This document shows, piece by piece, positions 1-62,169 of a DNA stretch of 64,000 nucleotides (the first letter of the stretch is position 1; every line of letters starts with the position of its first letter). Location of the stretch: positions 21,452,001 to 21,516,000 of the forward strand of contig CM097887.1 in the NCBI GenBank assembly GCA_044892525.1. The letters run 5' to 3'. This stretch comes from Schmidtea polychroa. Lineage: Eukaryota. Below the pieces are notes generated by a model. It was not told the origin of the DNA. It made no database searches and was given only the letters and a program-made list of their open reading frames with translations. The position numbers and the translations under genes are program-made.

Positions 1-1110
1 ATAAATATCATGTTTAAATATATGATAATCGTCGAAATTCTCCGTAAACCCAACTGATTGAATAGAGCTTTTTATGTTTTGGATAGACATAGAGCTTCAA
101 GCATTACTAATTCAAAGATTTACAAGCCCTTGGCTGGGAGCCCTGGGATTTCCACATCTTGTGTATTCTATTGCCTAGGAGTTTTCCAAATATTAATGAA
201 ACTGGAAATTCTGTCTTTAAATTCTTTAAAAATTCCAATACCTCCCGCATGTAAATAGGAGGTTAATCCTCCAGGTATTACCACAAGTTTTATATTTCTT
301 TTTCTGCAGTGCTCTTTTACACGTTCTGATATATGAGCACGGCAAGAATCCCATACAATACATTTTCCTTGACTAGCATCAAACATTAGTAACATTAAAT
401 TTATCCATGCGATTATTAAATCTTGATTTACCCATGCTTTTTCTTGTGTAACTCTATAAATATTGTTGAGTGAATTAATATTTGCAAAAGAATTTTTTCC
501 TTTGTGAATAGCAAGAGGTACAGCTTTATTTTCTTTAGCCCAAACTGACACAATTACTGTTATTCGCATGGAAGAAAACCTTGTTTATTTAATTATTACG
601 TGTCTCCGTCCTTTTAAATCAACTGTATGGGTCCTATTATCTTCGAAATTAATAGCTGTTTCATCCATTAACAATGTTTTCGACAAGTCAACATTAGGGA
701 TCGTAACTCTTAAAAACCCATATAATTAATGGCATGGGAAATTAACGTATCATCTGATAAATTCATAAAGTTGGTTGATCTTCTAAGCGACAATCCATTT
801 CATTTCATGAAACCGTCAATCCAGCGGCCTGAAGCTTTGATGTCAATATTATTTTGTCTCCTAATGTAATAGCTCGATCGGATATGAAAATTCGAGTAAG
901 GCTTTCTTCAACCTCCAGACACTCTTTTCATTGATGCAGATTGTGCTCTAATCGTTTCTTTATTCTTATACCACTGCTGAAACATAGATTGACTATACGA
1001 GCAACTATCTCTGTAGCCGAAAAAGTGAAACATGAATTTCCAAGCTCCATATATGAAATCATTTCTTTCTTAAAAGCAATTGTAAATGTTCTTTTTTTCA
1101 TTGGGGTGAT
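1..1110 (-). mobile_element. Degenerate pogo/Tigger (DDE_1) transposase
   Basis: Fragments GLSLRRST, LMDETAINFED, RITVIVS, AWVNQD, VWDSCRAH and VIPGGLTSYL, interrupted by stops and frameshifts. Confidence 0.8.
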
Positions 1111-1336: not shown

Positions 1337-4300
1337 CTAAATATAAATTAGCATCATCTTAATGTCAATTAGAACTTAATTTACCTATTTATTAAGTATT
1401 ATTTTTTGAGTGAGAAAATACATAAATTAAATTTTCTGATTTAATAATTTTCCAAGGATTGTTGAGTTGATTTAAAAATCATGAGACTTGTTGACCCCCA
1501 CTCAAATTATCCTTAACCCTAATCGNNNNNNNNNNNNNNNNNNNNNNNNNNNNNNNNNNNNNNNNNNNNNNNNNNNNNNNNNNNNNNNNNNNNNNNNNNN
1601 NNNNNNNNNNNNNNNNNNNNNNNNNNNNNNNNNNNNNNNNNNNNNNNNNNNNNNNNNNNNNNNNNNNNNNNNNNNNNNNNNNNNNNNNNNNNNNNNNNNN
1701 NNNAAAATCACATATAGCGTCGATTTCGTCCTTCGCAGAGAGTTCAATCTTTACTTGTAAGATTTTGGTGTCAGCTGGGAACCGTAGGAACGCTAAATAA
1801 AGTGAAAGATACTATTTTTACCGAAAATCGTCATTTTGAATACATCGTGTTATATTAGATGAGTCGATCAGAAATTAAGAAAATTCATAATTTTACTAAA
1901 AAAACTGGAATGTGGCATACCCGCATTTTTATATTAGAAACCAAATAATAAATGGTCCAAATTCCGGTAATAACTTTTAGCGTTAAACTATCCAAATAGA
2001 CCATTAAGGAGAACAGATAACTACATAAATGCTAACAATGGAGTTGTGTAATTTTTACGAATGATTATTCAATTCAGTAGAATTATATATTAATATTTTC
2101 TGTAGCAAATTAAAAAGAAATTGAAAATATAAATATGAATTTTTTAGATCGTCGCGGAAAGATAAAAGGAAGATGTTTTGTTAGAAAAAGAAAATAGTAT
2201 TACCAACATATACTTAAAATAAATTGACTGATTAAGATTCTTTTATTATTTCCCATATACATACCAAATTATTATCAGTAACTCCAAAAACAAAAAGCTC
2301 AACTGAACACATATCGACTGTATTAATCACTGGAATTTTGCTATCAATTTCGTCATTATCACATTCTGGTCATTGAAGCTTTTTAAAACGACTTTTGGAA
2401 TTAAAATTAATAACAAGTGACAAGTATAAAAAATTTTGATTTTGACAAGACTCTTTATTTCAATCATGATATTCAAAAACTCGATTACATGGAAGCATTT
2501 CCATTAGCAACAAGTTAAACAGCAATAAACAGCAATCAAACCATCTAGATATTTGTAATTCACTTTTATATTTCAAAGTTTTGGTGGGTTACTGGTACTG
2601 AAAAATCTTTACCTCCTCATGCTGTTTCCAGCGTAACCCAGGATACAATTTATAGCTGACCACTTGATACCCGTTGAGTAATCAACGTTGGTACTGTATC
2701 AAGGGTTGGGTACTAGCAAGAAGTGAGCATGCTTAGCATACTATAATTGTCTAGTACCCACTGGGGCTCACGGACTGCCGATAGAAGGCCTATGTCCGGT
2801 TTCTTTAGTCCCTATTCCGAAAATCAACATTATGACAAATTCGAAATGCCCAGATATGAATACACCCGTAATATTTATTCACAACACAAAATCAAAACTC
2901 ATAGGGTTATAGTCGGTTCTTTCGGTGCAGACTCTGACGAAGTAGCATTGAGCGTCACTTGGGCCTGACAGGCTTGGCGGATTCTCGCCCGCGCCGCTTT
3001 ACCCGGCCGGATCTTCTTCTTCGAGATCTTCGACGCTGCGCATTCCTTTCGTTGGTGGAGCAGCTCACTCATAGGGCGGATCCTGGAGATGGCCTCTCGA
3101 TCAAGGTTTTGTTGGTACGACTGGATCTCCAGCTCTCTCACTCTCAGGCGGAGGGCATGCAACTCAACATGATCTTGGGCGCTCTGGAGTTGCAATTGGG
3201 TGATGAGTTTCATCCGCTTCTTCATCTCTGTGGGCGGGAACCAGGTGCTCTCGAAATTTCGGCAATGGGCCTTAAGTCGCATTAACTTGGCCCGGCATTC
3301 TTCTACTTGTTGTTGCGCCCGCTCTCTATCTGCCCGCATTTCTTCCAGGAGTTTTAACACTGAAACAGACAACATTAGGAATCTTTACCTCAGCATTGAG
3401 TGACGCAAGTTAGTATGGTTAAATGAATTTCGCCCCTTCGTCACTACTCCCTTCTGCGCACATCTAGGCCTATTCTTTGGATTTCACCAAAGCTTATAGG
3501 GTGGTCGTAATGGCCAACGCTACGGAAAATTATAGTTGGTGGTAACAATGGCCCCCGTTACAGGAAAATCATTGAAATCAAAACGATGCACACAATGGAA
3601 TTAGTATTGATAATTAACACATACATAAATAATTGAACTAAGAAAATTATCATCAATAATAACACTGGTTAATGAAGATGATCAAAACGAAACAATATCA
3701 ATAATGAAATTAGTAGAGATGACCAGAACAAAACAGAGCAGTTAGATGGGCACGCACTGCCAAGAAGCACAAGGTACTATAAAAACATTCATCATATTAC
3801 AGGATTTGCACTGTGTATTAACAACAAAATCATTTCGGTTATATAATGTTTAATTATAAGTCTCCATCTTTGTCCGCCCGAATCTCCTTGGTGGAACTGG
3901 TGCCTTTTCGTGGTCGTCCTCGCCTTCTTTGCCGATTCGGTCCACGGCGAGGGCTTCTTGGATATTCCAGCCCACGTTGGAGAGCCGCAGTTCGTCTTGG
4001 GTGACATTGGGCTCGTGCGTACCCGTCACAGTCTTCCAACTCGCCGGCCAGGGTTGCTTCCTCGAGTCGGTGTAATCGGTCCACCGCCGCCTTTACCTCA
4101 TCAAAGGCGTCGATCAGGGCTAATGACGTGCCATTGATGTAAGGCTCTATCCTCGGTTTCACGGGGACCACATTCTGGTAGGTCCAATCGTGGATTTTAT
4201 ACCAGATCCACCTGGACCTCAGGCGAGTGAGTGCTTCCTCCTGGTCCAGTCTGGCGACTTCGTCTGCCTCCGCGTGGTTTAGGCTGAGTCTGGATGTAGA

Positions 4301-7300
4301 TGTCAAGGGATTCGCGTGACTGTCTTCTGGTCTAATATTAGGCATGCCTGTGAGATTAAGAGAACATATTAGTAGAATTCTATTCGCTCGTCTACGCCCG
4401 GTTACCCCAAGACGTTTGATACACTATTACATTTAAGTTCAAGCGTGACCCGTATTGCAATGATCTTTTAGGTGAAAAATGAACTTAATTAATTTCCCCT
4501 TCTGATTTCGATGTAATTTAAGTGGGCTAGAGAATTATGAAATTCAAGGTTTGTAAGTATCAGTTACAAAATTGCAGTTCGTATGTTTAAAGTGAAAATC
4601 CATAAGCTGTTTTTGACGAACTAATGGTTGATACAGTAAAAATGAGCGTTTAAAATTTTATAAACTAAATTTTCAATAGCGGTTGTTTAAATCATTTAAA
4701 GATTTAATTTAACTGTTTATAGCAATTTATGTTAATTTAAATATTAATTTTCCTTTAATAATTTTTAGAATTCCCTGTTAATAATTTTTGCAAAAATTTA
4801 TTCTACTAGGACCAACTATGGGAAGTGGATGTCGCACATTGTCTGAATTTACATTCAGCTCTTGCGAATCCCTGACCATAGTGGTTGTAAGTAGTTCCCT
4901 CATCAACTGATACTTAACGGGTAAATTAGCTTTTTAAATTTTTGAAGTTTGTATAATTTCAGGAATAAGTCTCCAAACTCTTCACTTTGAAGGTGACAAC
5001 TTAGATCATGGATTCGAGATGCCACTGTTTGATGGAAGTTCAAAATATGCCAGCGCTCTAACTTTGTGAGGATTTAGCTGGATAATATCATTTAGTTAGA
5101 TTTTTGATCTATGCCTTGGAGTTCTAAGTCCACCAATTTCACCCGAAGACGTCCAGCGATTTATCATTTGCTTTCGAGGATTTACCCTGATGGGAGTATT
5201 CAGTTATATAATTCTCGCAAAGCGAGCATTCAAAGGGACTTGTATGCATTGATTTATTTATGCCGTTTTCTGTTTTTTGAAGAGTATTTTGGTCAATAAA
5301 TCTAGCTCGATTTTTGAATCTTTGATTTCTTTACACAATCCTACTCGGATATTCAGTTTTTTTAGAGTAGCTTCGGCATGATTTTGTTTTTGCTGGGGTA
5401 GGTAAATGAACTAGAGTGTTCCTTCGTGCGATGATCCGAGGGACAATTCCATGAGGTTATTATTAATATAGGTATACACACGTACACTCACAAATGCACA
5501 TACGTAGTTATAACTACGTCAATTTACAAATTTAAGTTACTGATCCTGACGTCATTTACTGGGGGGTGTTACTAAAAATAGATCTCAGTAATTTTCCGGG
5601 ATTTTTATTGGAGGTACATAAATTTACAAATTTAAGTTACTGATCCTGACGTCATTTACTGGGGGGTGTTACAAAAAATATATCTCAGTAATTTTCAGGG
5701 ATTTTTATTGGAGGGTAGGGTCATTGTAACTAATAGGGGGATCCCAAAAATCAATAAAATTTTGGTTAAAGTTTTATTTAAGAAAATAATCCTTCCGATA
5801 ACGTAAACATAATGGTAATAATGACCAAGGTGAAAATTAATGTCGACAATACTAACAGTAGAAATAAATGATAACAATAATAATTTNNNNNNNNNNNNNN
5901 NNNNNNNNNNNNNNNNNNNNNNNNNNNNNNNNNNNNNNNNNNNNNNNNNNNNNNNNNNNNNNNNNNNNNNNNNNNNNNNNNNNNNNNNNNNNNNNNNNNN
6001 NNNNNNNNNNNNNNNNNNNNNNNNNNNNNNNNATAACGGTAAGGTAAATCATGATAATAAGTGTAAGTTTTATGCAGTGGGTAATAAATGTATAATTCGG
6101 AAGGGGGGTATTTATGAATATTTATAACTTATTAGTTTAACATTTTACAGACCAAGTATATGCTAGAATGAGTTAATTTAAGGCATTTATATAACAGGTA
6201 ATGAAGGTATGATTCAGGGGGGGGGGTGGTTATGAATATTTATAAGTTATTAGTTTACCATTTTACAGACTAAATATATATTAAATAAGTTAATTTAAGA
6301 TATTTATACAATAGATAATGAAGGTATGATTCAGGGGGGGTTGTTTATGAATATTTATAAATTAGTAGTTCAATATTCTATAAACTAAATACATAAAAAA
6401 TAAGTGAATCTAGGGTAATTAGGTAAATACATAACCTAGGGGCTAATTACGTAGATTTATCATTTTAACATTTTGTAAGTTAAATATATATCAAAATAAA
6501 TTAGGATATTTAAGTACTGGACGATAAGTATATAATTCAGAGGATCATCTTATGAAAATTTATAAACTATCATTTTTACATTTTATAAGTTAAACATATA
6601 TATCAAAATAAGTTAGGATATTTATGCATGAAAATTTACAACCTATCATTTTAATATTTTATAAGATAAATATATACATCAGAATAAGTTAGGATATTTA
6701 TGAATGAAAATTTACAAACTATCATTTTAATATTTTATAAGATAAATATATACATCAGAATAAGTTAGGATATTTATGAATGAAAATTTACAAACTATCA
6801 TTTTAATATTTTATAAGATAAATATATACATCAGAATAAGTTAGGATATTTATGAATGAAAATTTACAAACTATCATTTTAATATTTTATAAGATAAATA
6901 TATACATCAGAATAAGTTAGGATATTTATGAATGAAAATTTACGAACTATCATTTTAATATTTTATAAGATAACTATATACATCAGAATAAGTTAGGATA
7001 TTTATGAATTGGACAATAAATATATAATTCAAAGAACCATTTATGAAACTAGGTAAGTTGTACATATTCCAGTTGGGTTATAACCATGAACTGGTGATTC
7101 GACGACTTTACGGCATTGGTCAGAAAGATTGCCTTTTCTTTAAATTCAATATGCTGATATATGCAATTTCATACTGATGGTAATGACACACTCTCTATGA
7201 AGATAACGAGAAAAGGGTGGTGAGGATAATGATAATAATCTTGGAGGTGATATTACTATTAAGGCCAAATAGAATTTTTAAAGATTTCAATACCCATAAG

Positions 7301-10300: not shown

Positions 10301-13300
10301 CGGAAAATAACTACTTCGATCGATAGCACTATTATTTTCAATTAGAAATATTATCACGGTAGATATGAAGGAAAATTTCAATAACAAATTAAGACATAAT
10401 ACATTTTAGTTAAAACACGATTGTAAACTTAGCTTTCCGCCACGTGAACAGTTCCATCGTTGATTTGGATTTTTCGTAGTCATCTTTCATTTCATCCTTG
10501 AGGCATACTCGCATCTGGTACATCTACCGTAGGAAGTGTAAGAATTTCCAACAATAGGAAAAGTTAGACGAAAATCCAGTTTCAGATAGTGTTGTGTGAA
10601 CTAACAGGCCGTAGTAGCATCGCGAAATTTTCCAACGTAAATTGTGCAGATAAGCCACATTCAATTCATACTGATAAGACATATGAAGCGGGTTGATGAG
10701 AAATTACCAAATCGGTAGAATGAATCCAATTTTTTTTGTTTTTGCTTTACGTGCATGCATTGATAAGAGGCTCGTTAACAAACTCACGAATAGATAAGAG
10801 CTCATGAAAGAGATAGTTGATGAACCCGAGGAGTTTCAATTCACACGGCATTATATCCGATAAGTAGTGAGCAGAAACGAACAGCAATAAGCATGTGCAT
10901 CCGAAAATGACTCACATGTAGTAGGGCCCAGGTGGGTCATTCACAAGTATTGATTACCGAGATATGACAGTAAAGAGATAAGCCACCTGCTCTACAATTA
11001 TTCCGCTAAACATGAGACCCCTTTTAAAGTGCATTCATTAAGATTAATTTTCCTAAATTACGTAATTTAGATTATAAATGAATGTATCAGTGTGGTGTCC
11101 TGTTGATAATAACAAGAGATATTCGTAACCAAATGATAGAACCTTTTCCTAAATCGATGTAGAGTATTGTTATAGTCCAACCAAGTATAGTAAATGATAA
11201 TCACAACCTTAATCACATCGTTAAATTTGTCAGAGTTTTTCTAGCGTGAAATTTCTCCTTCCCATGAGAAGATTGAATTTAGATTTCTTAAACCCTACTC
11301 AAACTATGGATTATACTAAAAATTTAATAAGTTAATAAACTTTCCTGTATTTACAAATACCATTACAGTATGAAGGACTTCTGATGATCGTGTTAGAGGC
11401 ATATTTAGGTGATGATTGTGAAATGCCGACGGGGAGATAGTGGAAAATTTCGAGATGGACTTGAACTGATAAATGCGACCGGAGCATAGGCTTTTTACTA
11501 AGTGCGTTTCGTTCCAAATCTTAACTCAAGTAGGGAGTAAAATAGAATAATTAATCAACAAAGTTAAATCAATTAAGGGGAATAACGAATTAAACTAAAG
11601 TAAAAGTATAGAGATAGGTTCTAAACAGCCATAAGATAACTTTTTGGGGAATTACCTTGGTGCACGGAAAAGGAGAGATCCAAGGAGTAAAATTAGGTAA
11701 AGGACAGATAAACTTGTGATGATCGACTATACAGGGAGATAATTGATCTCATTAACTCATCTTGTCCTTCCTTTTGCCAGGTACTTCACGGCAAATAGAC
11801 CCTTATAGCTAACTGACGATTATACGTATCATTATCTTAATTTTCTTCGTTACAGCCAACCGACATGTTATCACAGAATAAGTCAGCAATACGACCCTGC
11901 TTCTCCTGCGCAGATAAAAACGCAGTGATAAAAGATCTACAAGCCCAGATCGGTCGATACAAGTGGAAGATCGACGAGCTGGAAGGCACATGGTTCAGCC
12001 CAGTGCAAATGAAGGAGATGCAGAAAAAGCTTCATCGCAGCGAACATTGATGGATTTGATGTGGGAAAAAATTCAAATGGATATTCATTGATGATTTTTC
12101 ATGTAAGATTTGATAGTCGCTCAAAGTTTTACTCGACATTGACAACAACAACGAAACGAACCGAGAGAAATTACAATGAATTGAAGAACTGATCAAATTT
12201 CCAGCATCATTTTCAAAAGTAAGTGTTCGAATTATTATTCCAATTGATAGACATGTTAAAATCAATAAAAAACAAATTCCGTTTTCGTTTTGTTAATCTC
12301 CTATAATTTCAATTTCATCTGAAGATTACAGTAAAATCCAAATCTAAAAGAAATGAAATCTAACATCGAAAAATAAATAACTGTAACACATCTCGTTTTT
12401 GATTGGCTGCTTTTCATGAACGTAGAAAACCAATACATGTACAAACCAATACACGCATTCAAATTCCACTTGGAATGCACACACCAATTTTCGAGTACAC
12501 ACTACTAATCCAATCGGAACAGAACACGCATGCTCACATGCCATGCCATGCCGCCGGCACACACACCAACCGACACCGCAATGTAAAATCATTAACATTC
12601 CGTTCATTCAACCATGCAACAAAAAAACACTTTGAAAGCTGCACCGGCACCACCCATTCCTCCACTCACCCTTATCATCAATACACTGCGGTAGTGCTCA
12701 AATGCGCGTCTGAACACGCCCCTGAGCTAAACCGCGCGTTGCGCATCACTGCGTTTCCTCGTTGAAACCAGTTCAGACGGGCAAAGCTTCTATGCCACCG
12801 CTGATACGAAAAACGTGTTGCCATACTCTGTCCCTTTTCAATCACAACTCCAAACTATCCAACCAAACAACGGCAATCACTTTCATCAATATTCTTGCAG
12901 TTATTTTGTTTTAATGGATGTCCAAATGAAATGACATAAATATATTTGCACTCAATACAGTAAATGAATAACAAATAATAATAAAAAAAAAAGATTGTAA
13001 TTCAAATGTAATATTCATAAAGTTGAATCTCTGAATGCATCCGTATAAATTCAGAAATTGTTTATAGTAAATCATATATCAGGCATAATTTTTAGGAAAA
13101 TAAAATATTTTATTAACAATTTATAAATTTTAATTGAAAAAAAAATTAATTAGGATTTGTGAACTGAAAAAAAAATTTCTAGGAATTTTCTAGTTAATTA
13201 AATTTTCCTTAATTTTCATTTTAATGGTATTTTATTTATTAACCTAAATTTTCCAAATTTTTATTTTTTGTAGTTAATTAGAAATTTTTTTTTCTAATCC

Positions 13301-19800: not shown

Positions 19801-22800
19801 AACTGTCATCTCGTGATGTACGGATGAATGTATGATTTCAAGCGTTATCATATATTGTAAGCAAATGCGCAATATCACCAAAAGTTTGGTTACTATTAAG
19901 ATCTTATAACTTCGGAAAAGTTTATGTTCAAATATAAAAAAACAAATCTGAACTTCAAGTGGTTCGAGCGACGCTACAAAACTGTTTATCTGATATTAAT
20001 TATTAATTAATTATGAAAAGATCGCACTATTCACAGATACTTTTCCGTAAAATAAGATTTCATTGGGAATTGTAAACCGGGCTATAAGGAGAGAAAAGAA
20101 AATATTAATTTTTTCTATCCCAGGTGGCGCGATCATTTCAGTTACTGACCCGGTATTCGAAGAAAAACCATTACTTAACCGACTTTCACTCTGTCGGTTG
20201 ATGAGTTTCTCTAAATGTATTGGCATAGAGACATTTTCAATATTTATTGCCAGTGGGCTTATATTGTTCTATAAAGTGTGGTTTACGCCTGTCATCACTG
20301 ACACTATGTTTATTGCCTAAATTAACTTACCACCTTACTATTTGTTTGCACATTATATGCCTGGTTCTACTTCTGGGTTATTTTATCCGCTTCCCTCTAT
20401 TTTCTTCCGGATTACCGTGTAGTTCAGATATGTCAAACTTGCGGCCCACTTGATATATCAGTACAAAAAAAACAAAACAAAACTTAAAAAAAAAAATTTC
20501 TATGTAATCACTTCTTATAACTGTTACATTTAGTTTTTATCGTCCATTAAACAAAAAATTAAGGAAACGAACCCCAAAAATCTAGTTAGGGTGCGAAAAT
20601 AAATTCTGCTTTGTCGTACTATACCGAGGTATGTTTGTTATCCTGCTCCAAGGTTCTCAAACAATTTTGGGATTTGAAAGACGAAATATGTCAGTTTTTA
20701 ACATCAAAAAAACAAGACATCGCCTTATGGTTGATATAACGAAACACTTATCCGATTTAAATTTGAAACTGCAAGGAAAGGATCAAATCATTACAAACAT
20801 GTGTGACCAAGTTAATGCATTCAAATGTTNNNNNNNNNNNNNNNNNNNNNNNNNNNNNNNNNNNNNNNNNNNNNNNNNNNNNNNNNNNNNNNNNNNNNNN
20901 NNNNNNNNNNNNNNNNNNNNNNNNNNNNNNNNNNNNNNNNNNNNNNNNNNNNNNNNNNNNNNNNNNNNNNNNNNNNNNNNNNNNNNNNNNNNNNNNNNNN
21001 NNNNNNNNNNNNNNNNNNNNNNNNNNNNNNNNNNNNNNNNNNNNNNNNNNNNNNNNNNNNNNTAGTTTTGTTGAGTTTTTAATTAAATAAATATTAACTT
21101 CGGTGTTTCAGACTCCACATGTTCTGAAAAACAATTATTTATGTTGCGGCCCGCCGGCTCATGATACTAGTCTAATGCGGCCCGCAGGCCAGTTTGAGTT
21201 TGAAACCCCTGGTGTAGTTGCTCTCTCCTGTTACTACACTGAGGCTAGGTTTTAAATGATTCTATACTGGTATGATATTTCTACATGGATTCCGCCCTAA
21301 ATTAAACCCGGTCTTTATTACCCATTCTAAATTTAATTTATCTGTATTCCTATAATAAATTTAAGCAATATTTCTCTTTTACTTAATATTTTAATAAACT
21401 CAAATTATTGTTACGCCAACTTTAATATCCCATTAAATTTTAATAATAATTTCATGCTTTACTAAATTTACTTTATTTTAGTAATTGACTTGACTTTAGT
21501 TGAGTCTGATTGTTTTAAAATTTTATTTATTATATGAATATACGCGCGTTATTTATATAAACATATCGAAATGAATTTGTAATTAAATATTTCTTTTTCA
21601 TTTGTATAATGCCTAAACGATCAGTCACACTGTCGAAAAGTACTTGGACCAAGTTATATTTTCCTCAGTTGTGACTGCTCATACCGAGACAGGATTTTGG
21701 TCTCTGTGGATTTTAGCGAGCGGAAATTAGGATTGGCCTTAGGGTAATTCTATTTAATTAGTTTGCACTAACAGTTCCATAAGAAACATGAGGGAAATTG
21801 TTTCGTCGAACTGCAAAACCAGTCCCAAATAAATTAACGCGGTGAATTTTTATTAACTCACATTGGAGTTAATTTATCATTCATGTCGATAAGTGGCCAC
21901 ATATAGTTGAATCACAGATATTGTCATAAATTCAGATCAATTCAAATAACTATTGTTATGCATTTTGGTTACTACCATGCCTCATCCTGGTTCCGGTTAT
22001 TACTTGTTTGATGCCCTTATTGTAGTGTCGGCTATAGTAATTTGTTACGGAAGTGACTTATTCATCTCGCTCGACACAAATGTGTTTTTGATCACAAGGA
22101 CCCTAGATGGTTCATGTGCTCATATTAAAAAATTATTTTAATGTTTATTTGATGTTTTTATTATGATTTTTATTAAACTTTTTGCGTTATTTTTGCTTTC
22201 TCCAATCAGTCTCATCTTTTAATTTAATTTATTAATTAATGGCCTTCTGGCAAACACATGTTTGTATTCTTGGTTACGCTGGAAACAGCACGAAAGGTTA
22301 AAATGTGGATTACATGTAACCTACCACTAAGATAAAATCACAAGAGGAAAAATAAACTTTTAAAAAATAAATTTGGAAAGCAAAAAAATCCATTACTCAA
22401 AGATCTTAGCACTTTTAATGAAAAAAAATGAACTACAACATAGTAGAGATGTGATAGAAAGGTACGTTGACAATTCCGATTCCTTTGGTGACATATTATT
22501 TATTGTGAAAGTGCAAAAAGTTGTGTACAAATATACCGCGCGTGTAACGGGGGAATAAATTTTTGTTTTTATGATAAAATTATAGCTTCCCAGGAAAATG
22601 TTGGTAATTTTACAATTCGATTATGCAACGAGCACTGGCAGAACTATAAAGAACGCAACAAAACTTTGGGTAAGCTGGCGTACGCGGTTTGTATAACAAT
22701 AAAAGCTCGCATGTGACAGCCACTAGTTGTCTATGTCTGACTATTAGACCTAGAAAACGACGTGGCATTTGTAGCATGAAGTTTGAGCCCCGAGTGTACG

Positions 22801-25800
22801 GCTTACCACAAATGTTAAATAAAGATCATTGAGTACCAATAACGACTACAACGCGACCAATAGCGAAAAAGCCACAGATGGCTCGCGAGCCAGTGTTTGG
22901 CGACCACTGAACAAGAATGGTGATTTGTGTTCCATTCGAGCTTATTTCAAAACCATTAAGATTATAAAGAACTAAAACCCTTATTTAATTTATATTGCTT
23001 ATAATATACATTCACAAATATGAAATATGAAATAAAGTTCAATGACTGATTCGTAAATTTGGACTGTAAACTTGTCTGTCATATTTAACAATTCTTATTT
23101 GTCATTTGTTTCGATAAGTGGTCAGATATAGTCATAAATTCAGATCAAATCATTTTATTACATACGGATCAAAAATTCTTTGAATTTTAAGATCTGCTAA
23201 CGTTCTTTTCAAATATTCCACTGTGACATACATTGTACAACATACGTTTCCTTGTTAAATAAATGGACTGATTTTATATGACCAACATGTAAGAACGGTT
23301 GTTATGTACAATTCTTGTAAAAAAGCATTAAATTGTAACTAACTGTTTGAAATATATTTAGGCAAACAAATATTGTATTTATATTATATCTTTTAGTATT
23401 CTTTTCAAAAAATATCATAAATTTATTCATTTCTAGTATTTTAGAAATCTTATATTTCTTCGGATTTTTAGTGTGAAATATACATCTTAATGATCAAAAA
23501 CTTGAAATAGCCATGTTTAGCAATCATTAATAATTAATTTAACTCATGACGCTGTATTGTTATTCTACTTTAGATTTAAAAGTATAAATATCACAAAATT
23601 AAACTTAAATAGGAAATTTAAGATATAAAAATTATTTATATTTCGTTCGAAAGAAACTTTTTAAATACATTTTGTTTAATTTTATAATTTGTTAGGCGAC
23701 GCTCTAGTGTATGTCGCCCAAAATTTTAAATTATTTTAACTCAATAACTCAATAAATAAATTGATATGTATACACTTTTAACATACCCACCATGAAAGTT
23801 ACTGATATTTTTGAGTTATTCACAATTATAAATGACAATGAGCTTTTAATTCGATATCTACAAACGCATCACCTGATTTCTTCAACAAAAATTTGTCACT
23901 GTGGACGCAACATGTCCTTAATTAAAAGGGCACAAACAAGTGACGGTTTTGTATTTCAATGCCCGAGGAAATGTGGTCAGGTTTCTATTCGAAAAGGAAG
24001 TTTTTTCGAAAAAAGCAGAATGCCCCTTAAAAAACTGGTGTTATTTACGTATTTTTGGCTGCAAGACATTCCCACGAACAGGATACAGTCGATGATTGGT
24101 ATGGCTAACCAAACAATTTCTGATTGGAATAATTTCCTATGTGAGGTGTGCTCGGAATCTTTACTCGGAATGTCGGATGATGAAAGAATGATCGGGGGAG
24201 AAGGTGTGATAGTTGAAATTGATGAAACTTTGATTTCAAAGAAATGGAAATATTATCGCGGAAGAAGATATCCCGAAATATGGTTATTTGGAGGAACCGA
24301 ACGTGGCACAAAAAAAATGGTTTGGACAAATTGTTCTTGAGAGAAACCGAGAAAATCTAACTGCTTTGATTGAGAAGTTTATTAAACCGGGCAGTATTAT
24401 TTACAGCGACAGGTGGCCCGCGTATTGGACAGAAACTTATAACCTGGTACATTTAAGAAATCAAAATTATATCCACTTATCTGTTAATCATAAACTCTGG
24501 TTCAAAGATCCAGTAACCGGTGTCCATACCAATAAAATGGAAGGATGGTGGGGAAATATTAAGGTTGACACGAGGAAAAGGCAAGGAATGAGTGTTGAAC
24601 AAAAGATTAATTTTCTTGATTTTCGATTGTGGCTTTCAAGACAAAATGTTGATGAAGAAGATATTTTGATTATATTCTGGCGCTTGGTTGCTTCGAAGTA
24701 TAGTTTCGATGAATAAATTTTTAATAAACGTATTTACTTATATTTCATTTAAATATATTAATTTAATTTTAAATTAATTTAAAATTTTGGGCGACATACA
24801 CTAGAGCGTCGCCATTTGTTAAACGAATTAATTTTTATCATATAATAAAAACTATTATATTTTAAGATTCAAAAAATTCTCATTTCGGAGAAACTTAATA
24901 AATGGATTAAATTATAATCATTGAAGTGTCAAATAAAACAAACCTTATCATCCAGTGAAGATATTATTCTGCCCCAAGGATCTGTAGCTAGTGAGTGACC
25001 ATAACTTACATGATTTGCTTGATAATCCCGAGCTATGCTGCATAGGCCAACAAAACATTGATTGTCTAACGCGATTCCTCTACCAAGTAATTCCAGTATG
25101 CAGGTCCTGTAGCCATATTAAATGCTGCGGGATACAAAAGTAAATTGCATTTTTTGTTTCGAGTGTAGATTCCAGCTACTTCAGGAAATCGAAGATCGTG
25201 GCAAATACCAATACCAACAGTAACATTTCTATCTTTACATACAGGAATATTAAAGGAAAGAAATTCACTTCCTGGCACTGATGTCTCAGACTCGTTATAA
25301 ACTAAATTACAAATTCTATATATGTTGCAATATATATTGAAATTTATGAATTATTTATCTTATTACCAAAAATATGAAATCAACCATTTTATTTATCTTA
25401 TTTAGATAATTATTATAAATATATTTAAACAAAAATAGAACATGTCAAAAATTGTCGTTCATTTAAAAAATAAAATTCTTCAAATTTCTTTAAAATTTTC
25501 TTTTATCCAGAAATTTGATTTTCTAACAAATAATTAAAATGCAGAGTAATTTCATTAAGTATTTCTCAACCCAAAACTCACCATGGACAGCAAAATGGAT
25601 GCACGACAACTGGTTCACTGACAAATGGATCACCGACAAACGGATCACAATATTCAATTCACGACGTTCGGTTACGCATTTTTTTATTATCACTTAAAAA
25701 AATTGTTATTGAATTGTTTAATTAATTGAACCTGAACGCTGTACCTATTAGTCCAGAACTAATATATATATATATATATATTGGTGGGTTACAGGTAATC

Positions 25801-28800
25801 AAAAATTTTAACTCATCGCGCCATTTCCAGCGTAACCCAGAATACAATTGATGTCTTACCACTTGATACCCTCTGAGTGATCAGCGTTGGTATTTTATCG
25901 TATCAAGGGTTTGAGTACCAACAAAAAGTGAGCATGCTCCGCATACTATAATTGTCTAGTACTCCCATAGGTCCATGGACTTCCGATAGAAGGCCTGTGT
26001 CCGATTATGTCGGGTTCGGTTTTATTGTATCTGGGTTTACATCCGATATTTTGTGAAGGGTATGTTAATATTATTAGCCTGAGGATTCATTGCAAACTTA
26101 TTGGTCGAAATTGATTAGTAGTAAAAATCGATAATTTTAATTATTGAAAAAATTAAATCGATAATATGGATTACCCAGTTATAATTTCATCACGATAATA
26201 AAATTTGAATTCGTAACATAAGTTAGTTTGTAATTATTTTCAGAGGGTAGGGTGTTGATGATGCCATTAGCTAAATAATATAACTTGATAATAATAAGAT
26301 AAATTTATACGGGGTAGAGTAATGATGAGGATATACTTGGTATAGATAACATGATTTGAATATTATTTAAGTAGATAAGAATAAGTTTATATAACGTTAA
26401 TAGGACAAATCTAGTTGATAATAACAAATTGGCAAGGATATAAGTTAATTAGTGTGAATCATATAAGTTGGGTATAAGATAATTTGATAATAATGTAAGT
26501 TCAAAATATAAGGTTAATAAGATAAATTAAGTTAATTACATATAAGTTGATAATAATATAAGTGTTGGATGACTGGGGTCGACGAATTAAAGAATTCGAG
26601 GTGATAAAATGCTATAAGACCGGCCCAAACACATATCGGGTAAACATCTACGTATAGTCCGAACAATTCCAATAGCCAAGTCAAACAATCACGTCTCTAT
26701 CAATTCAAACAATCAATGTTCCATTCAACAGTGATTCATTCGTCGAAAAATACTCTATATATGTTGGGTTATTGGGTTGGTGATAAATTTAAATGTTACT
26801 CTAACTCCAAGCGTGTCTTTATACGATCCACAAATAATACTTGACAACAGAAATCTTTATTGATAATCACAAATAAACTTTCACTTTACACTGACAATCA
26901 ATTCAACACTCTGCTTGGTGACTATACTGTTAGGTTCGAGGAGTATGTAGTCGAACTAACACAAAAACGTTTTATCTGACTCCAAGTAATTAATTTGTGC
27001 GTGTAGGTAAATAAATAAATAAGATAATATGTTTTAAATATTTATTTAACGATAAAAAGTTAGTTACACGTTCGTTTATATATATTTTAACACGCTGCTT
27101 TCTATAAGTACAGAAAACGGTTATACAAACCGCCCTAAAGAGTATTACTAAGGATCAAGGCTGGCCCTAAATGCGCCAACAGCCCGATATAGGTGAACGG
27201 AAAAGAGATAGGGAAGTTTACCAAATATTACGCGATAGAGTCAACCCAGAAATTGGTTAACTCTTTTTCAAACAATTATTAATAGCGAAACAACACAAAA
27301 ATACGTGCTGACACTATGGTTTCCCTTATTTAAGTTTAATTTAATTTAAACAAATAAGCCTTTTATACAAATATTGATAATTATTTAGATAATGATAAAC
27401 TAACTAATTCAATCTTCTTCCCAAAATGGCTCCAAAGAATATTAAATTTAATTCACGAATAGTCAAAATTAATTCCTATTGATCGGTATATCCAATATCA
27501 CTTGGAATTCTCCAATCAGATTGAAGTTTTTGAATAAAGTAAAATTCCAAAATTGCATAATTAATTTTCTCTCGCTCGATGAACTTCTTACTACAGTTAA
27601 ATTCCTAAATTAGTTTTTTCCTTTTTTCAGAATCGAATTGATTTTTCCTATCTAAATTTAGCTACTGCGGTTTTCTTAAATTCGTCCGCTTATCTCAATT
27701 TTTCGTCCCTTCCATCTAATTTTTATCTACTATTTATATAAATTTATTTATTCTAATTCTATTAATAGTAATTGTTTAATTACTATTTTTATTATATATT
27801 TTTAAATAATTACTATTTTTGTTAGAAATCTATTTTTAGTAATTATTTATTACTATTTATATTTTAGTTCCAATTTTAGTAATTTTTAAATACTATTATA
27901 TTATAATTCTAATTTTAGTAATTAATTATTATTTAATTTCAAAACCTTTAATTCCGGTTCCTACTGAACCCCAACAATACCAAGCTTATTACAACAATCA
28001 GTGAGGAATAGCACTTGCGTATAACACCGGATTAAGAGATCACAAATTACTGATTGGTTTATCAACTGAGACATTGAGCTGGTTGTTTTTTTTACTTTCT
28101 TCACAAATTTATTCAAATACTCAAGTAACTTCTTTTCGTTTAATTTTTCAACTAATTCTTTTATTCAAATCTTCAGCAACAATTGTTCTTCACAATTATT
28201 TTCTTTACAATTCTTTTTCACAATAGTTTCTCCAACAACGTTTCCTCAGACGTTGTCTAATTTTTCTCTAATAATTTTATCTCTCAAATTTGTCTCTATA
28301 CTTGCCTCTCAAATTGTTTCACGAATTGTCTCTCAAATTGTCTGAATTTGTGTCCACCAGTTTCTGTTTATATAGTTATTTTATTTGTGGAACTGGCTAC
28401 AAATTCTGTTTTTAACTTTCGTTTTCCTCTACGTCAGCCTTATCTCTGACAGATATATAGATATATTTCCATTTTCCATTTTTGTTAAGCCGCCTTCTCC
28501 AGACAATTTCGCTATCTCTGACAAGCTGTCAAGCTATGGCTTTTCCACTTATTTTGTTTTTCTGGAATTTGGAATTCCACCTCTATTTGTACTTCTTAAT
28601 TAACAATGACGTTTGTTTTAATTTCTTGTTTGTTTCCTTTTATTTGATTTATCTTTCTCATTTTAATTTCTTTTTACTTCCGCTTTCTTTTCTGAGTTCC
28701 CATAGATCGTCCAGTTTGTCATGACGATCTTCCCAAAGGTAATTTATTTATTCATTATGTTATATATCATTTAGGTATCCTCAACATATATATTTATCTT

Positions 28801-31800
28801 AGACAATTACAAATATTTATGTGTTGGTTTTTTTGTAAATACTTTATATATCTTTATCGTAGATGAATATTTATGTTGTTGGTATTTTTGTAAACAATTT
28901 TATGAATTGTTTTGGTGTGTCCTTAATTATTTATTCTTTTATGTGTACATAATAATTTTCATAAAAATATATCTTAAAAACGGGGGAATTAATTAATTGT
29001 AATTATATAAATGGGGTTATTAATCAATTTAAAAAAATTAGCAGGTTTTAAAGATCAATAAAATATAATTAAATTTGAATTCAGAACATATGTTTTTTCA
29101 CACTTAAAAATAATTAGGAGTAAAACAATATGAAAATAACTAAGGTTATAGCAATATAATCACAATATAATTAAGGCTACTATAATACGTAAAAATAATA
29201 TAACAATATAATAATAATACTATATTAATATAGTAGAAATATAGTAAACAACTTCGAATGTCCTTAATATGATAAGAGAATAAAAGAAGTACAAAAAATA
29301 CGCGAATATATATAAATCGAGTAAATGGTCAACGAGACTATTTTAAAAATATTTCCATAATAGAGACAACTAAAAATATAAATTATTGGAAAAGTATTTT
29401 AGAGCGAATTGTTGAAGTAATTATTTTTTTGTCTTCGAGAGGATTGGCTTTTCGGGGCAGCAATGAAATTATTGGCAATAAAAGTAATGGAAATTATTTG
29501 GGATGTATAGAGTTACTAGCAAAATTCGATCCACTGTTACAGCAACATTTACTGGATTTTTAAAATAAAGGAAAAGGGACAGTATCATATTTGTCATCAG
29601 TAATTTGTGATGAATTTATTGAAATTCTAGGTAACAATGTTCGAAGCTCTATTATTGCAGAATTAAAGGAAGCCAAATATTTTTCTATCATAATTGACTC
29701 AATACCCGATATTTCACACTTAGATCAGCTCACAATTGTTGTTAGTTATGAGAACACTGTGGGAAATCTTGTAGAGATTTTTAAATTTTATTGAAAATGT
29801 CGGTCATAAAAGTGAAGAAATGGAAAAATGCGTAATAGGACTCTTAGAAAAATACGGAATTGATTTAGAAGATTGTAGGGGGCAATCTTATGATAATGCC
29901 TCTAATATGTCAGGAATTTATAGCGGACTTCAGGCACGAATAAAGTTAAAAAATAATTTGGCTATTTATGTACCATGTGCACCCCATTCCCTGAATTTAA
30001 TAGGTGAGTGTGCTGCAGAAAGTTGTTTGGAAGCCACGAAGTTATTTTTTTTCGTTCAGAGTATATATAATTTTTTCGTTGCTTCAACTGGCCGTTATGA
30101 AATATTGAAACATCGCTTATCTGTGAAATATAAGATGCCAAAATCACTGAGCAGCACTCGATATGAATATTTTAAGCATGCTCTTAATGATATATTTACA
30201 GATTTAACACAGAAATGTTCCACTAGAATTGAGGCAGAAGGTTTGGAAAAGCAGTTCAATTCTCTCGAAACTAGTTTTATGCTTTCATTTTGGAATGATA
30301 TTCTGGAAACCATGAATAAAATTAATGTTAGCCTCCAGAAAGTTGAAATTGAAATTGAAACAGTGGTTAAATTATACACTTCATTGGAAACATATATTGA
30401 AGAACGTCGAAATATAGATTCATTTAATTATTACAAAAAGAAAGGAGAAAATCTATCGGGTTGTTTTGAATTTAAAACTGCAGGAACTGTTAAAAGAAAA
30501 AAGCAGTTCGATGAAGGGACATCAGCCGACACACAATTTGATAAAAATAGTAATTTCCTTATAAATATTTTTTATGCAATTATTGATAAACTTTTGGCAG
30601 AAATAAAAAAACGGAAATCTGCATATGATCACATTACCACTAAATTTGGAATTTTAATGAATTTAAAACATTTCGACGAAATATGATACGAGAAAAAGCA
30701 ACTATTTTATATAAAGAATACCCAGATGATCTTGAAAATGGTCTAATCGAGGAATGTTTACATTTTAAACATGTAAATTTAATATCGTATAACTTAACAG
30801 CATTATCTAAATCTGAGCAAATTTTAAGAACAATAATTGAATCGCAAATTGAATGCACTTTTCCGAATATAACAACAGTTCTACGAATATATTTAAGTAT
30901 CACCTGTACAAATTGTAGCAGAGAAAGGTCGTTTTCAACTCTCAAGAGAATAAAAAATCATCTAAGATCATCTTTAGGACAATACAAATTAAATAATTTA
31001 AGTATTTTGTCAATAGAATCGGATGTCCTTGAGAAACTGGATCACAAGAAAATTATAGATATATTTGGTAAAATATAAATGCCGCAAGACATATTTAAAT
31101 TAAAAATTAATATTTAATTCACATACAGTAATACCCCGCACTTACGTACACTTTGGGATCGGAGCGTGTACCTAAAACAAAAATGTACGTAAAATGAATC
31201 TACTGCTTTTATTGATGAATAATATGTTTGAAATAAACTAAAACAATAAACATATAAATAAAAAGAAAAAGAAAAAGAGGGATATTATGCATGTAGTTTT
31301 ATACTTTTATTTTAGTGTACATAAAACGGGGTATTACTGTATTTATATAAATTTTTTGAATTTGGTTTTGCGTAAATACATATTTAAGTTTTGAATTTTT
31401 GAAAATAAAATTGAATTTTTATAATAAAAGTATGTAGGGGTGCAAAATTTTATTGGGCCCAGGGCGCTCAAACTTATTAATACGGCCATGTTAATATCCA
31501 CAATGAATTGTAAACACCACGTTGACGACAGTTAAGTAAACAACTAAATTACCAATAAAATAGACAATACTGATGATAATAACAACTAGAAAATTTGCGA
31601 ATAATGTTGATAACAAAACTGATTGACTGATTACTTCAGTCCTTCGACTACCTGGCGGAAAGGCTACTTGTGATTAATATCTTATCTTTTCAGAGAAATG
31701 TCCAAGTCAAACCCAACCGTAGCCAATCTCAAACCGTGCTTCTCGTGCGCGGACAAAAATGCAACTATTAAACAAGGGCATATAGATATAGGAGCGTCGA

Positions 31801-34800
31801 AAAAGAAAATCGATCATCTAGAGGGTACATGGTTTACTCCAGCCCAAATGAAAGAGGCCAATCGGAAAGTGTTAAGACTCGAGCACTGCCAGGATAGCAT
31901 CTTGGAAGAAAATCGAAATCTGCGCATCACCATCAAGTCGCAGTCCAAAGCTCTCCATCGGATATATACCGAATCCGAAATTAAGAAACGGGTCTCAGAA
32001 TGCCCGGTTCTCGATGAAACCAATGTGTTCCTGCACATCACATGCACAACGGTCTCTCGCATGTCACTAAATCTATCTGTACTAACGACGATGAAGAAGC
32101 TTCACGTCTCTCACCTGAAGTCATATACATTGGTTCCAGCAAGGCTCTTACTAAGACCAAAACTCCTACAATCCAGCCTTCGCTGGACACTAATCCACTC
32201 AGTACTATCAACTCTAACAGCCGGCCGAAGAGAAAACGTTTGATTCGTGCCGAGAAATCTAAGCGTCCGCAGAAGGCGTTTTATTTTCGGTCCCTCCAGT
32301 AGTTCCACCACTGATAGCTATGCCGACAGCGATGCAAATCCCTTCTTTCCGCATGATACCTGCGACTGCCACTCCCTGGCCCTATGATGATCAGCTAGTA
32401 GCGGACCTTGAACTTCTTCTCCAGGAGAGGGGTGATGTCTTTCCAGCTGACAATGCCACGGTGGAAATAGCATAGTTCTATGTAGACATGTTTCGCCACA
32501 ATCCTTGCGTTAGATTAGACGTGAACGACGATAGATGATTGCTAATAAATTTAGTGTTGTGGCGAATAGAATTTTGTTTTCTTTTAAGTTGTTATCGTAT
32601 AGTTTTTGTTGATTAATCTGCATGATGAGAGTTGATATTACCCTTCGGACCTAGGTTTGAATAATTCGTTGTATAAGTACTAATTCAGTTCATAAGGATG
32701 TAAGCCCTTCTATCGGTATTTCGTAACCCGTAAATGAGGAAGCTATGGAGAGTAGTTTTAACGCTCATCAAATATCCTCAGCTACTATGTGCAATACAAA
32801 CATGTTCGTCACCATGGGCACATGAGTAGTCAAAACAACAGTCACCTTAGTATCTAGGAAGGAGTCGGGTTGAGTCAGCCACAAATACCCCTACTTCCAT
32901 CTTATGAGCAAGACACACGCCTAGGCGCCAACAGTATTTTTAATATAATATCTTTATTTATGAATTTAGAAAAAATATTATTTATTCAGGAAATTTTAAG
33001 TGTTAACAAATGCTCACATAATGATTTTATGCATTCAACAAATCTTATGTAGGAACCATACGAAATTGATATGTCGAGCAAGAAACTTAAAGGGTTAGGA
33101 TGTTGTGTATGTATGTGTATAATCTTAGTAGATAGATGTGTGCACTCCCGATCCTATAGGAATCCTCGAATCTCAATTTTTTTTGATGGAATAGGGGAGG
33201 GGGGTACCTTTTTTAACAGGTAGAATTCAATTCCCTATAAGATGATTTGATTTTAAATTTTATATTTCGTTTTGTGTATGCAATACACATGTTTTCTTGA
33301 GTTTTTGCATTTTTCATCTAGTAAAAATAATTTCCTTGAGTTTTTACTGTAACAATGTAACGATGAAATTTATTTCTCTACAAATTAGTATGATAAAAAT
33401 TAAAAGTATTGGATTATTTTTTGTAATAAAATTTCTAGTTGAAATAATTTTATTGAGTTTTTAATGTAATGTCTATAAACTGGTTTGATCTAGAATTGAA
33501 AATGGTTGCAATAAATTATTACTTTGTTGCAATTCGATGATAAATCTATTTATTTGTTGCGATTCATGTCATTATTTTATTACTTTGTTTCAATATTTTT
33601 ATTATCTTGTTACATTTTGGATAAATATTTCATAACTTTGTGGAAATTTAACGAAATATGTTATTATTTTGTTGTAATTTAATGAAAAGTCACAATTTTT
33701 TGCAATATTTTTATTAATTTGTTGCCTTTCACCGAAATAATGTAATACTTTATTGCAATTTACTTACACTATTTTATTACTTTGTTGCAATACTTTTATT
33801 ATTTTGTTTTAATTTGATAAATATTTTATAACTTTGTAGAATTTTACCGAAGAATGTTATTACTTTGTTGTAATTTAATTAAAGATTTGATAATTGTGTT
33901 GTAATTTATTGTAAAATATTTATGAAATTGTTGCCATTCACCGAAATAGTTTCTTACTTTATTGCAACTTAATGAATACTTTATAACATTATTGTAATTT
34001 ATTGAAAGATTTCGCAATATTGTTGTGATTTATTGTAATATTTTTATTAATTTTATAACCATTAACTGAAATATATTATTTTGCTATAATAATATTTAGT
34101 GATTGATATAGTTTAAAATACTGCAAAATAAGTTATTATTTAAACTCATATGCAATAAAGATGCCATATCAATGCATGATTTCGATTGGTTGATATGTGC
34201 TTAACTTCTATCATTTGTATGTACGTATGTATGAAATAATATTAATGTGTGCGTCTGTATAAAATAATGTTAATATCAGCGTCTTTTTGTGTGTGAGTAT
34301 TACGTGAGTATTACACCAACATGTTGGTGTATTGTAAATATGTATGTATTAAAATATGTACATCTATTACACTAACATTTGTGTTACTTATTGATTCTAA
34401 AAACTTTCCTACTCCTTACTCGATTTTGATTGATTGACGTATGTGTAATTACTTGAAGAATAAGCAAATGCTTTAATTTTATTATAATTTATTGTATTTA
34501 ATAATTTTTCTTTTTTTAGTAAACCGATGCAATTTATATCAATTTGCGTAACTGAAATTCATAAAGATGTTAATTATTGCAAGTCTGCTACAACATCATA
34601 TTTCAAGATACATGATGATAGTTTATCGGGTTATGCATGTCCTGAAAGTCTCACCTTTACAGCGGGTTTTACGGCAATTTGGAGATATGAAGAGTAGTAT
34701 GATAGTGTTGGGCTAAACGGTTAGTGGCTGTGAACTGAGTAAACGAAGAAAAACAGAAAAATAATTAAGTTAACAACAAATAAATTAAGGACACAATAAT

Positions 34801-61340: not shown

Positions 61341-61891
61341 AACATTAATTTCATCAAATTTCTTTAATATTATTTAGTAATAATAATTATATTTTGAGTA
61401 ATAATCGAATTTCTTTTATTTTATATTTAAAAAACTTGAATAATTTTAATGGTATTTTATAATTAAGGTAACCTTTACCCGAATTATTGTCAATGTAAAG
61501 TCCACGATGACAGCAATTGCCATGAAATAATGAAAAAATACTATTGACATGTGAATAAACGAGTCAACTTCTTTATATGTCCCATTTGTAACAGCTCCCA
61601 AAATAACTTTTTCTGACTTTTAACATTAATTTCATCAAATTTCTTTAATATTATTTAGTAATAATAATTATATTTTGAATAATAATCGAATTTCTTTTAT
61701 TTTATATTTAAAAAACTTTTGAATAATTTTAATGGTATTTTATAATTAAGGTAATCTTTACCCGAATTATTGTCAATGTAAAGTCCAAGATGACAGCAAT
61801 TGCCATGAAATAATGAAACATGTGAATAAACGAGTCAACTTCTTTATATGTCCCATTTGTAACAGCTCCCAAAATAACTTTTTCTGACTTT
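61341..61891. repeat. Tandem duplication (281 bp plus about 270 bp)
   Basis: aacattaatttcatcaaatttc starts at 61341 and 61622; near-identical apart from a short deletion. Confidence 0.93.
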
Positions 61892-62169
61892 TATAGTGAA
61901 CAACAATGTGCACATTTAAATCAATTTTCTTGTACAAAGAAACTTTTTGTATCTATTCATTTAAATAAAAAACGATTTGTTATTGTTTGTCCACAACTAT
62001 CGAAACTATTCGTAATTTCCGATGTTGAAGATGTTCATTCATCAAATGACGAAACTATAGTTCAATATGGTGGTTTTAATGAACGTTATTTAAATTTAAT
62101 TTGAATAAGGCACATACTATTGTTAAAATGGTTTCTTTAAATTTCAATAAATTAATTATGCCTGCCCCT

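Follow-up and report, generated by a model that had tools for sequence, protein, structure and literature searches.

A structured 3′ tail is what one would expect of a retroposon copied by an enzyme that recognises the 3′ end. In the stringent long interspersed nuclear elements (LINEs) and the short interspersed nuclear elements (SINEs) that partner them, it is a folded 3′ tail, and not poly(A), that the enzyme recognises, and compensatory changes in stems together with fixed nucleotides in loops or flanks are typical of such tails (PMC3747384). In a related arrangement, the R2 protein binds the 3′ untranslated region (UTR) of its own RNA and positions that RNA for the synthesis of complementary DNA (cDNA) (PMC11194090). 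Here we analysed a stretch of 64,000 nucleotides (nt) from Schmidtea polychroa (GenBank assembly GCA_044892525.1, contig CM097887.1, positions 21,452,001 to 21,516,000), referred to throughout as the window, in which a folded unit of 220 nt lies on the minus strand behind two short open reading frames (ORFs), ORF A and ORF B. We favour, at about even confidence, the reading that this unit is the cis-acting 3′-terminal RNA module of a retroposon of the type without long terminal repeats (non-LTR), or of a non-autonomous rider on one. What carries this reading was observed directly: a repeat with defined limits and a common terminus, its folds, and substitutions that spare base pairs and add G·U pairs on the sense strand.

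The window holds three copies of the module. Copy 1 (2582..2801, minus strand), delimited by its homology to copy 2, comprises domains D1 to D4 and a terminal CCA, and is joined to the ORF-bearing body. Copy 2 (25782..26006, minus strand) is the module alone, with no ORF upstream; it is 81% identical to copy 1 over 227 aligned positions, has sharp limits and is followed by (TA)n. Copy 3, which came from a sensitive BLAST comparison of the window with itself, is the shortest of the 5′-shortened copies (~22262..22326, plus strand), consisting of D4 only with the same CCA terminus and showing 78–81% identity to copies 1 and 2. Similarity between copies 1 and 2 breaks off abruptly at both ends, the 5′ limit of copy 2 lying 3–6 nt before D1, and outside the module neither copy 2 nor copy 3 has anything in common with copy 1. 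An earlier note on this DNA, made by reading the sequence, had placed a folded element at 2583–2797 and a second copy near 25783–26002. Both are real, although the terminal CCA takes the first to 2582, one base past the range then given, and the limits of the second are now 25782–26006.

All three copies share the 3′ terminus ...GUAACC(C/U)A-CCA, which ends at 2582, 25782 and 22326 in copies 1, 2 and 3, respectively, where the next base is A, A and C. The 3′ flanks are unrelated, being A/T-rich DNA behind copies 1 and 3 and (TA)n behind copy 2, and none of the three copies ends in poly(A). The 5′ ends, in this small sample, are nested, with lengths of more than 1.7 kb for copy 1, 225 nt for copy 2 and ~65 nt for copy 3. 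No partial tandem arrangement of the module was seen. A miniature inverted-repeat transposable element (MITE) or other cut-and-paste DNA transposon was considered, the earlier note having named the terminal inverted repeat of an ordinary MITE as an alternative identity, and rejected: no inverted repeats bracket copies 1–3, and no direct repeats of at least 7 bp flank copies 2 or 3, which are ~19% diverged and have uncertain 5′ limits, shorter repeats being unjudgeable in such AT-rich, diverged flanks. An LTR or solo LTR was likewise rejected, as a single module stands beside the ORFs and no second one occurs upstream of them as far as the N run at 5887; the same run (5887–6032) also sets the limit to which copy 1 can be followed in the 5′ direction.

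Read on the minus strand, D1 (2772..2797) is a 4-bp stem, GGAC..CCUUCUAUCGG..GUCC, around the conserved motif GGCCUUCUAUCGG, which is invariant in copy 2. D2 (2707..2760) is a 54-nt hairpin in three tiers, with an outer stem of 9–10 bp, a middle stem of 3 bp and an apical stem of 7 bp capped by a UAA loop, and D3 (2657..2706) combines an 8-bp outer stem with an inner 6-bp hairpin. D4 (2585–2640, or 2582–2641 with the end) is a three-way junction, in which a closing stem of 7–8 bp, GGGUUAC/GUAACCC, encloses a GNRA-type hairpin, GCUG-GAAA-CAGC, and a second hairpin; the single-stranded CCA that follows is the end of the element, at 2582. Re-reading confirmed everything that the earlier note had said of the D1–D4 sequences on this strand. 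When folding energies were compared, domain by domain, with those of dinucleotide shuffles, D2 proved the strongest domain (copies 1 and 2: z = −5.4 and −4.6). D3 did well in both (−2.6 and −2.9), as did D4 in copy 1 (−3.8), with weaker values for D4 in copies 2 and 3 (−1.5 and, with a shifted fold, −2.6), whereas D1 had no significant stability (−1.0 and −0.2). D1 is a conserved, single-strand-rich sequence motif rather than a stable hairpin. D2, D3 and D4 fold far better than shuffles but D1 lacks a stable fold, so that the label of a four-domain structure was overstated. Folded as a whole on the minus strand, the copy 1 module reaches −72.4 kcal/mol (z = −3.5; −2.3 for copy 2), while on the plus strand the z-scores are −3.0 and −0.65 for copies 1 and 2.

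In copy 2, the outer stem of D2 carries one compensatory change from G–C to A–U and two new G·U pairs, the apical loop is GGA instead of UAA above an invariant apical stem, and the inner hairpin of D3 has a compensatory change from U–A to C–G with one broken pair beside it. A 5-nt insertion sits in the internal loop of D3, and the D4 hairpin has become GCUG/UGGC, giving two G·U pairs. The closing stem of D4 is invariant between copies 1 and 2 and has one U·U mismatch in copy 3, and the second arm of D4 is poorly conserved. The features of copy 2 listed in the earlier note (the compensated outer stem of D2, the G–U pairs, the altered loop, the insertion in D3 and GCUG/UGGC) were all found again; the compensatory change with its broken neighbour in D3, and copy 3, had escaped that note. 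Circularity was avoided by predicting 62 pairs from copy 1 alone and scoring them in copy 2: 51 were unchanged, 4 had become G·U, 2 had changed in compensatory fashion, 4 were broken and 1 fell in a gap. All 4 one-sided pair changes yield G·U on the minus, ORF-sense strand. Between copies 1 and 2, substitutions are sparse in stems, with 13 of 124 paired as against 23 of 94 unpaired nucleotides affected (Fisher p = 0.009).

The strand preference was gauged by placing the 36 observed substitutions anew, at random, on bases of the same kind. On the minus strand 6 pairs were broken where random placement broke a mean of 12.7 (p = 0.002; p = 0.007 with copy 2 as the reference), as compared with 11 against a mean of 15.0 on the plus strand (p = 0.06; p = 0.045 with copy 2 as the reference). 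An invariant U·G pair in the apical stem of D2 would, like the four new G·U pairs, read as an A·C mismatch on the plus strand. Formal pair counting agrees with these counts, though its shuffle control is powerless at 2–3 sequences. Covariation in the strict sense, with only 2 two-sided changes in 2–3 sequences, is suggestive; the claim of strand-specific covariation therefore stands as far as the G·U pairs on the ORF strand and the difference between the two strands go, but its covariation part is underpowered. A selected structure specific to the strand of the upstream ORFs, as proposed in the earlier note, is supported by the pair-sparing substitutions, and we consider that this structure is real, favours the ORF-sense strand and probably acts at the RNA level. 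Copies 2 and 3 are probably dead insertions, with part of their divergence being neutral decay, which would account for the few broken pairs, including the U·U mismatch in the closing stem of copy 3.

A structure working in single-stranded DNA (ssDNA), for example at the terminus of a rolling-circle, Helitron-like transposon, would share several of these properties. Rolling-circle elements also show a common 3′ end, variable 5′ ends and retention of the 3′ end in shortened copies, and DNA hairpins tolerate G·T wobbles, such that strand asymmetry alone is no proof of RNA. We nevertheless regard it as very improbable, since the canonical Helitron terminus and insertion context were not seen by eye (CCA is followed by A, A and C), the array of four domains in 215 nt, in which internal loops and a GNRA-type tetraloop occur, is of a kind typical for RNA, and no Rep/helicase gene was noticed among the ORFs of the window.

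No known RNA family accounts for the module among those searched. Rfam 15 gave no match at the gathering threshold anywhere in the window (the families including hammerhead, twister, hepatitis delta virus (HDV)-like, R2 element, transfer RNA (tRNA), viral tRNA-like and small nuclear RNA (snRNA)), no match in region 2400–3000 at E up to 10, and only chance matches, with E above 1 and far below gathering, in copy 2 and in the region of a further locus, elem3, described below. ARAGORN found no tRNA genes in the window, and by Rfam and ARAGORN the module has no similarity to tRNA, 5S or 7SL RNA. The failure of the earlier note to match the element to hammerhead, twister, HDV, tRNA or snRNA patterns is thereby upheld, and the known Rfam family that it had considered as a competing identity did not appear at either threshold. 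Its list of possible functions (a ribozyme, a packaging or replication signal, or a 3′-end element) narrows to a 3′-end and reverse-transcription signal, in keeping with the shared 3′ terminus and nested 5′ ends, while the ribozyme finds no support.

The closing stem of D4, 7–8 bp long and followed by a single-stranded CCA in 3/3 copies, does resemble an acceptor-type helix, a likeness that was noticed post hoc and is weak evidence. D4 with its CCA might then be a tRNA-like 3′ end defined by a tRNA-processing or CCA-adding enzyme, the CCA being subsequently copied into DNA; or else the module might be a self-cleaving ribozyme. The (A)CCA stands at the exact end of each copy, poly(A) is lacking, and D4 at ~60 nt is about the size of a tRNA. 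We think this explanation improbable all the same: ARAGORN reports no tRNA, Rfam yields no tRNA, tRNA-like, mascRNA or ribozyme match at E up to 10, D4 has two arms and not a cloverleaf, with the second arm poorly conserved, and a 3-nt terminus spotted after the fact carries little weight.

Upstream of the copy 1 module lie two intact ORFs on the same strand. ORF B (2899..3375, minus strand) encodes 158 amino acids (aa) with a predicted coiled coil and a basic tail, and has a relative, P0001, that is 78% identical; ORF A (3854..4345, minus strand) encodes a helical protein of 163 aa, also with a basic tail, for which no relatives were found. Both lie in GC-rich islands, the GC content of ORF A being ~55% in DNA of ~28% GC. 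The ORF B family is represented by four loci in the 64 kb, of which ORF B is intact and the other three are broken. Elem3 (31698..32302, plus strand; 31% identity to ORF B over 75 aa) is a distant member with at least one frameshift, in which the N- and C-terminal parts of the family are split over two overlapping frames. Elem4 (37095..37857, plus strand; 52% identity to elem3 over 103 aa) likewise has at least one frameshift, and elem5 (11865..12050, plus strand; 62% identity to elem3 over 53 aa) is a fragment of the N-terminal part only, with one premature end.

P0001 was found by a word-index search on two low-coverage ENA metagenome contigs from different samples (L001:1-638, L002:1-549; ENA ERZ2271643, ERZ2270917), in which the 143 nt upstream of ORF B are conserved as well. 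The comparison of the two coding sequences (dN/dS 0.28, dS 0.44) places ORF B under purifying selection. When 1.84 billion proteins were searched exhaustively with a profile, three relatives of ORF B came back, namely P0001 and two proteins, P0002 and P0003, in which the family forms the C-terminal part behind N-terminal parts that belong to a calponin-homology protein and a neurotransmitter-type transporter. P0002 and P0003 look like chimeric gene models, and the ORF B family, judged by this distribution, behaves as a dispersed, mobile gene. In Pfam, ORF B reached no family at the cut-off (the only match, RH1, had E 0.048 and 14 bits against a cut-off of 24), and in the PDB it had chance matches only. 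ORF A has no homolog, no Pfam family and no PDB match, and its AlphaFold2 model, of low confidence (pLDDT 54), consists of two long helices. An endogenous viral element was rejected, as protein-based locus searches of IMG/VR with ORF A and ORF B came up empty and the RNA motif patterns are absent there too: the exact D2 22-mer and a gapped D4 pattern had no matches in metagenome contigs, IMG/VR or prokaryote genomes.

A pyrimidine tract followed by AG occurs 2–9 nt before the ATG of ORF A (4345, minus strand), elem3 (31698, plus strand), elem4 (37095, plus strand) and elem5 (11865, plus strand), that is, in 4/5 of the family ORFs tested as compared with 6.4% of ATGs across the whole window; a weaker acceptor-like site precedes 3339 (minus strand) in ORF B and is conserved in its ENA relative. 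Such splice-acceptor-like sites suggest expression as a captured terminal exon or via spliced-leader trans-splicing, which would fit the chimeric make-up of P0002 and P0003.

These properties could also be those of a fast-evolving, multi-copy family of host genes, with the module serving regulation or stability in the 3′ UTR and the short copies being decayed fragments of duplicates. Purifying selection on ORF B, acceptor-like sites in the manner of ordinary exons, and GC-rich exons on an AT-rich background would all be at home there. A host family would not, however, lead one to expect that copies 2 and 3 are unlike copy 1 everywhere outside the module and yet all end at the same base, that members occur in other genomes as fusions with unrelated host proteins, or that six family fragments should crowd into 64 kb of transposon-filled DNA with 3/4 of the ORF-family copies broken, and we give this explanation little credence.

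Whether the ORFs and the module form one element bears directly on where the borders of that element are drawn. A search of the window with a D1 19-mer, allowing up to 3 mismatches, gave 3 matches where 0.01 was expected. Two are those of copies 1 and 2; the third lies some hundreds of bases past elem3 and on its strand (32696..32723, plus strand), contains the exact 11-mer plus flanks and is identical at 21/27 positions. Finding the D1 motif behind a distant gene of the ORF B family links the ORF body to the 3′ region, and on this ground we infer that ORFs and module belong to one element. Elem3 has no detectable similarity to D2–D4, and its 3′ region folds no better than shuffles. The 3′ regions of elem4 (38040–38070, plus strand) and elem5 (12775–12803, plus strand) are alike and contain a D1-like stretch (GGC..CUUCUAU-like) that is too weak to call.

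The main rival to the favoured reading makes the 220-nt unit an independent, short, non-autonomous retroposon, SINE-like though with no recognisable polymerase III head, that landed behind the ORF unit by chance or target preference, the ORFs coming from some other element or gene. Copy 2, which begins 3–6 nt before D1, shows the unit standing alone with sharp limits; an AATAAA lies after the stop codon of ORF B, ~70 nt upstream of D1; the spacer between ORF and D1 has no significant similarity between copy 1 and elem3; and the two contigs with P0001 both stop 21 nt past the stop codon. This common end may be a repeat boundary or a drop in coverage in AT-rich sequence. Conversely, the D1 motif behind the elem3 ORF would call for two independent insertions, which is hard to credit, copy 3 is shorter still, so that copy 2 need not be full length, and the unit has no tRNA, 5S or 7SL similarity. 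On balance we hold an independent unit to be unlikely. It would shift the borders of the element and leave the working of the module unchanged, the unit still being a handle for a reverse transcriptase.

Returning to a 3′-terminal module of a non-LTR-type retroposon, the copies end at one fixed 3′ position, are shortened to nested degrees at the 5′ side and have a fold that selection seems to preserve on the sense strand, a combination that argues for target-primed reverse transcription, in which an RNA is copied starting from its 3′ end. By analogy with the systems described above, the element would be transcribed from the strand that bears ORF A and ORF B, and its RNA would fold into the robust hairpin domains D2, D3 and D4 behind the D1 motif. 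A reverse transcriptase that the visible sequence does not encode would bind the module and, on target DNA that has been nicked, begin cDNA synthesis right at the 3′ end (...stem-CCA). Wherever synthesis broke off early, the resulting copy would retain the 3′ end and lack more or less of the 5′ part, with copy 1 long and copies 2 and 3 short. In such a scheme D2–D4 may serve as the binding scaffold, the terminal helix with CCA as the start site, and D1, conserved more deeply, as a sequence-specific contact.

Several points weigh against this scheme. No reverse-transcriptase gene with the module as its tail lies within the 64-kb window, ORF A and ORF B resemble no known retroelement protein in the Pfam, PDB and homolog searches, and copies 2 and 3 have no target-site duplication of at least 7 bp. 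The AATAAA between the stop codon of ORF B and D1 leaves room for a separate insertion; the dissimilar spacers of copy 1 and elem3 tell the same way, as do the P0001 contigs, which have different 5′ ends and both end short of the module. G·T wobbles would stabilise ssDNA too, so that the choice of RNA over ssDNA is not proven. Finally, there are three copies only, with none in the metagenome, viral and prokaryote collections, so that few observations underlie the truncation pattern and the covariation alike.

Should the favoured reading be true, the element would be one more retroposon whose mobility hangs on a folded 3′ RNA handle, and the module would help to annotate a repeat-rich genome and to predict the enzyme-encoding driver of the family. 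Its unusual features are ORFs that lack known relatives and yet appear to be under purifying selection, acceptor-like sites before these ORFs, and a helix-plus-CCA end in place of poly(A) or a microsatellite. Taken together, these features would also suit a retroposon with neither promoter nor reverse transcriptase of its own, whose acceptor-sited ORFs are expressed by host-transcript capture or trans-splicing and whose 3′ region, with D1 and a CCA end matured by tRNA-end enzymes, is used by a foreign reverse transcriptase. We offer this as a long shot; it would, if true, be a novel strategy in which a mobile element relies on the RNA processing of its host for both of its ends.

The surroundings of the module are AT-rich (~30% GC) and packed with transposon remains of pogo/Tc5, hAT, IS1595-like and LTR-retroelement type. 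An intact hAT transposase of 599 aa (51490–53289, minus strand) has a BED zinc finger and a hAT dimerisation domain, and its closest database relative is 76% identical. Two adjoining ORFs (29820–31078, plus strand, and 31109–31356) belong to a second hAT-type transposase, with a weak DUF4371 match and a hAT dimerisation domain; they are followed by a pair of 30-nt inverted repeats 188 nt apart, which may represent a small foldback or MITE-like insert. Remnants of pogo/Tc5-type transposases with a DDE_1 domain were found at 17602–18477 (plus strand), where a Tc5 DNA-binding domain is also present, and at 168–569 (minus strand). Of two overlapping ORFs at 23792–24716 (plus strand), the second encodes a transposase domain of the IS1595/ISXO2-like kind, which is uncommon outside bacteria but is known as a eukaryotic repeat. 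The RNase H domain of an LTR-retroelement polyprotein (40167–40727, minus strand) bears no relation to the module, and no other domain associated with reverse transcriptase was seen in the window. Tandem or near-tandem repeats (6476–7083, 5515–5714 and 61341–61893) comprise an array with a period of 76 nt, a 100-nt duplication (95%) and spaced direct repeats of 271–283 nt (91–100%). Five N runs interrupt the window, at 1526–1703, 5887–6032, 19111–19292, 20830–21062 and 53316–53758.

Compared with known systems, the repeat family matches no named clade here, and it may already sit in repeat libraries. Penelope-like elements occur as 5′-shortened copies, retain splice signals and have a 3′ 'tail' that is characteristic of them (PMC11167929), all of which have counterparts at this locus. 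They differ in that the module region is without a hammerhead ribozyme (Rfam), an ORF for reverse transcriptase or GIY-YIG, and a partial tandem arrangement. Plant-virus tRNA-like structures and fungal mitochondrial retroplasmids have tRNA-like 3′ ends in CCA. The module is similar in that a terminal helix and a single-stranded CCA stand at the end of the template without poly(A). Unlike those ends, it shows no sign of a cloverleaf or of a pseudoknot that mimics an acceptor, and neither Rfam nor ARAGORN gave a match, the likeness amounting to a single helix plus 3 nt. A poly(A) tail is also missing from the tailless retropseudogenes of tRNA-derived RNAs (PMC3747384).

Parallels are also found in the SINEs and other elements that borrow a LINE tail, including LINEs that retain only ORF1 or are internally deleted. 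The module has no head derived from tRNA, 5S or 7SL RNA, and no partner LINE was found in the window; like these elements, however, it occurs as a non-coding unit of ~220 nt (copy 2) and in a longer form with ORFs that do not encode a reverse transcriptase, and to move it would need an enzyme that is provided in trans and acts through the common tail (PMC3747384). The likeness extends to the stringent non-LTR 3′ UTRs themselves, such as that of R2 and the L2-type stem-loops shared with SINEs. No ORF for reverse transcriptase or endonuclease is attached to the module, upstream of which stand two short helical proteins with no known relatives, neither R2 nor any other family gave a match in Rfam, the flanks are not ribosomal DNA, and no terminal microsatellite is present except for (TA)n after one copy. 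What the module has in common with them is a folded 3′ end of ~50–250 nt on the sense strand, made up of several hairpins (PMC3747384; PMC11194090), copies that end at the last base of the element with no need of poly(A) and are frequently shortened at the 5′ side, and stems that compensatory changes seem to preserve, together with certain fixed nucleotides in loops or flanks.

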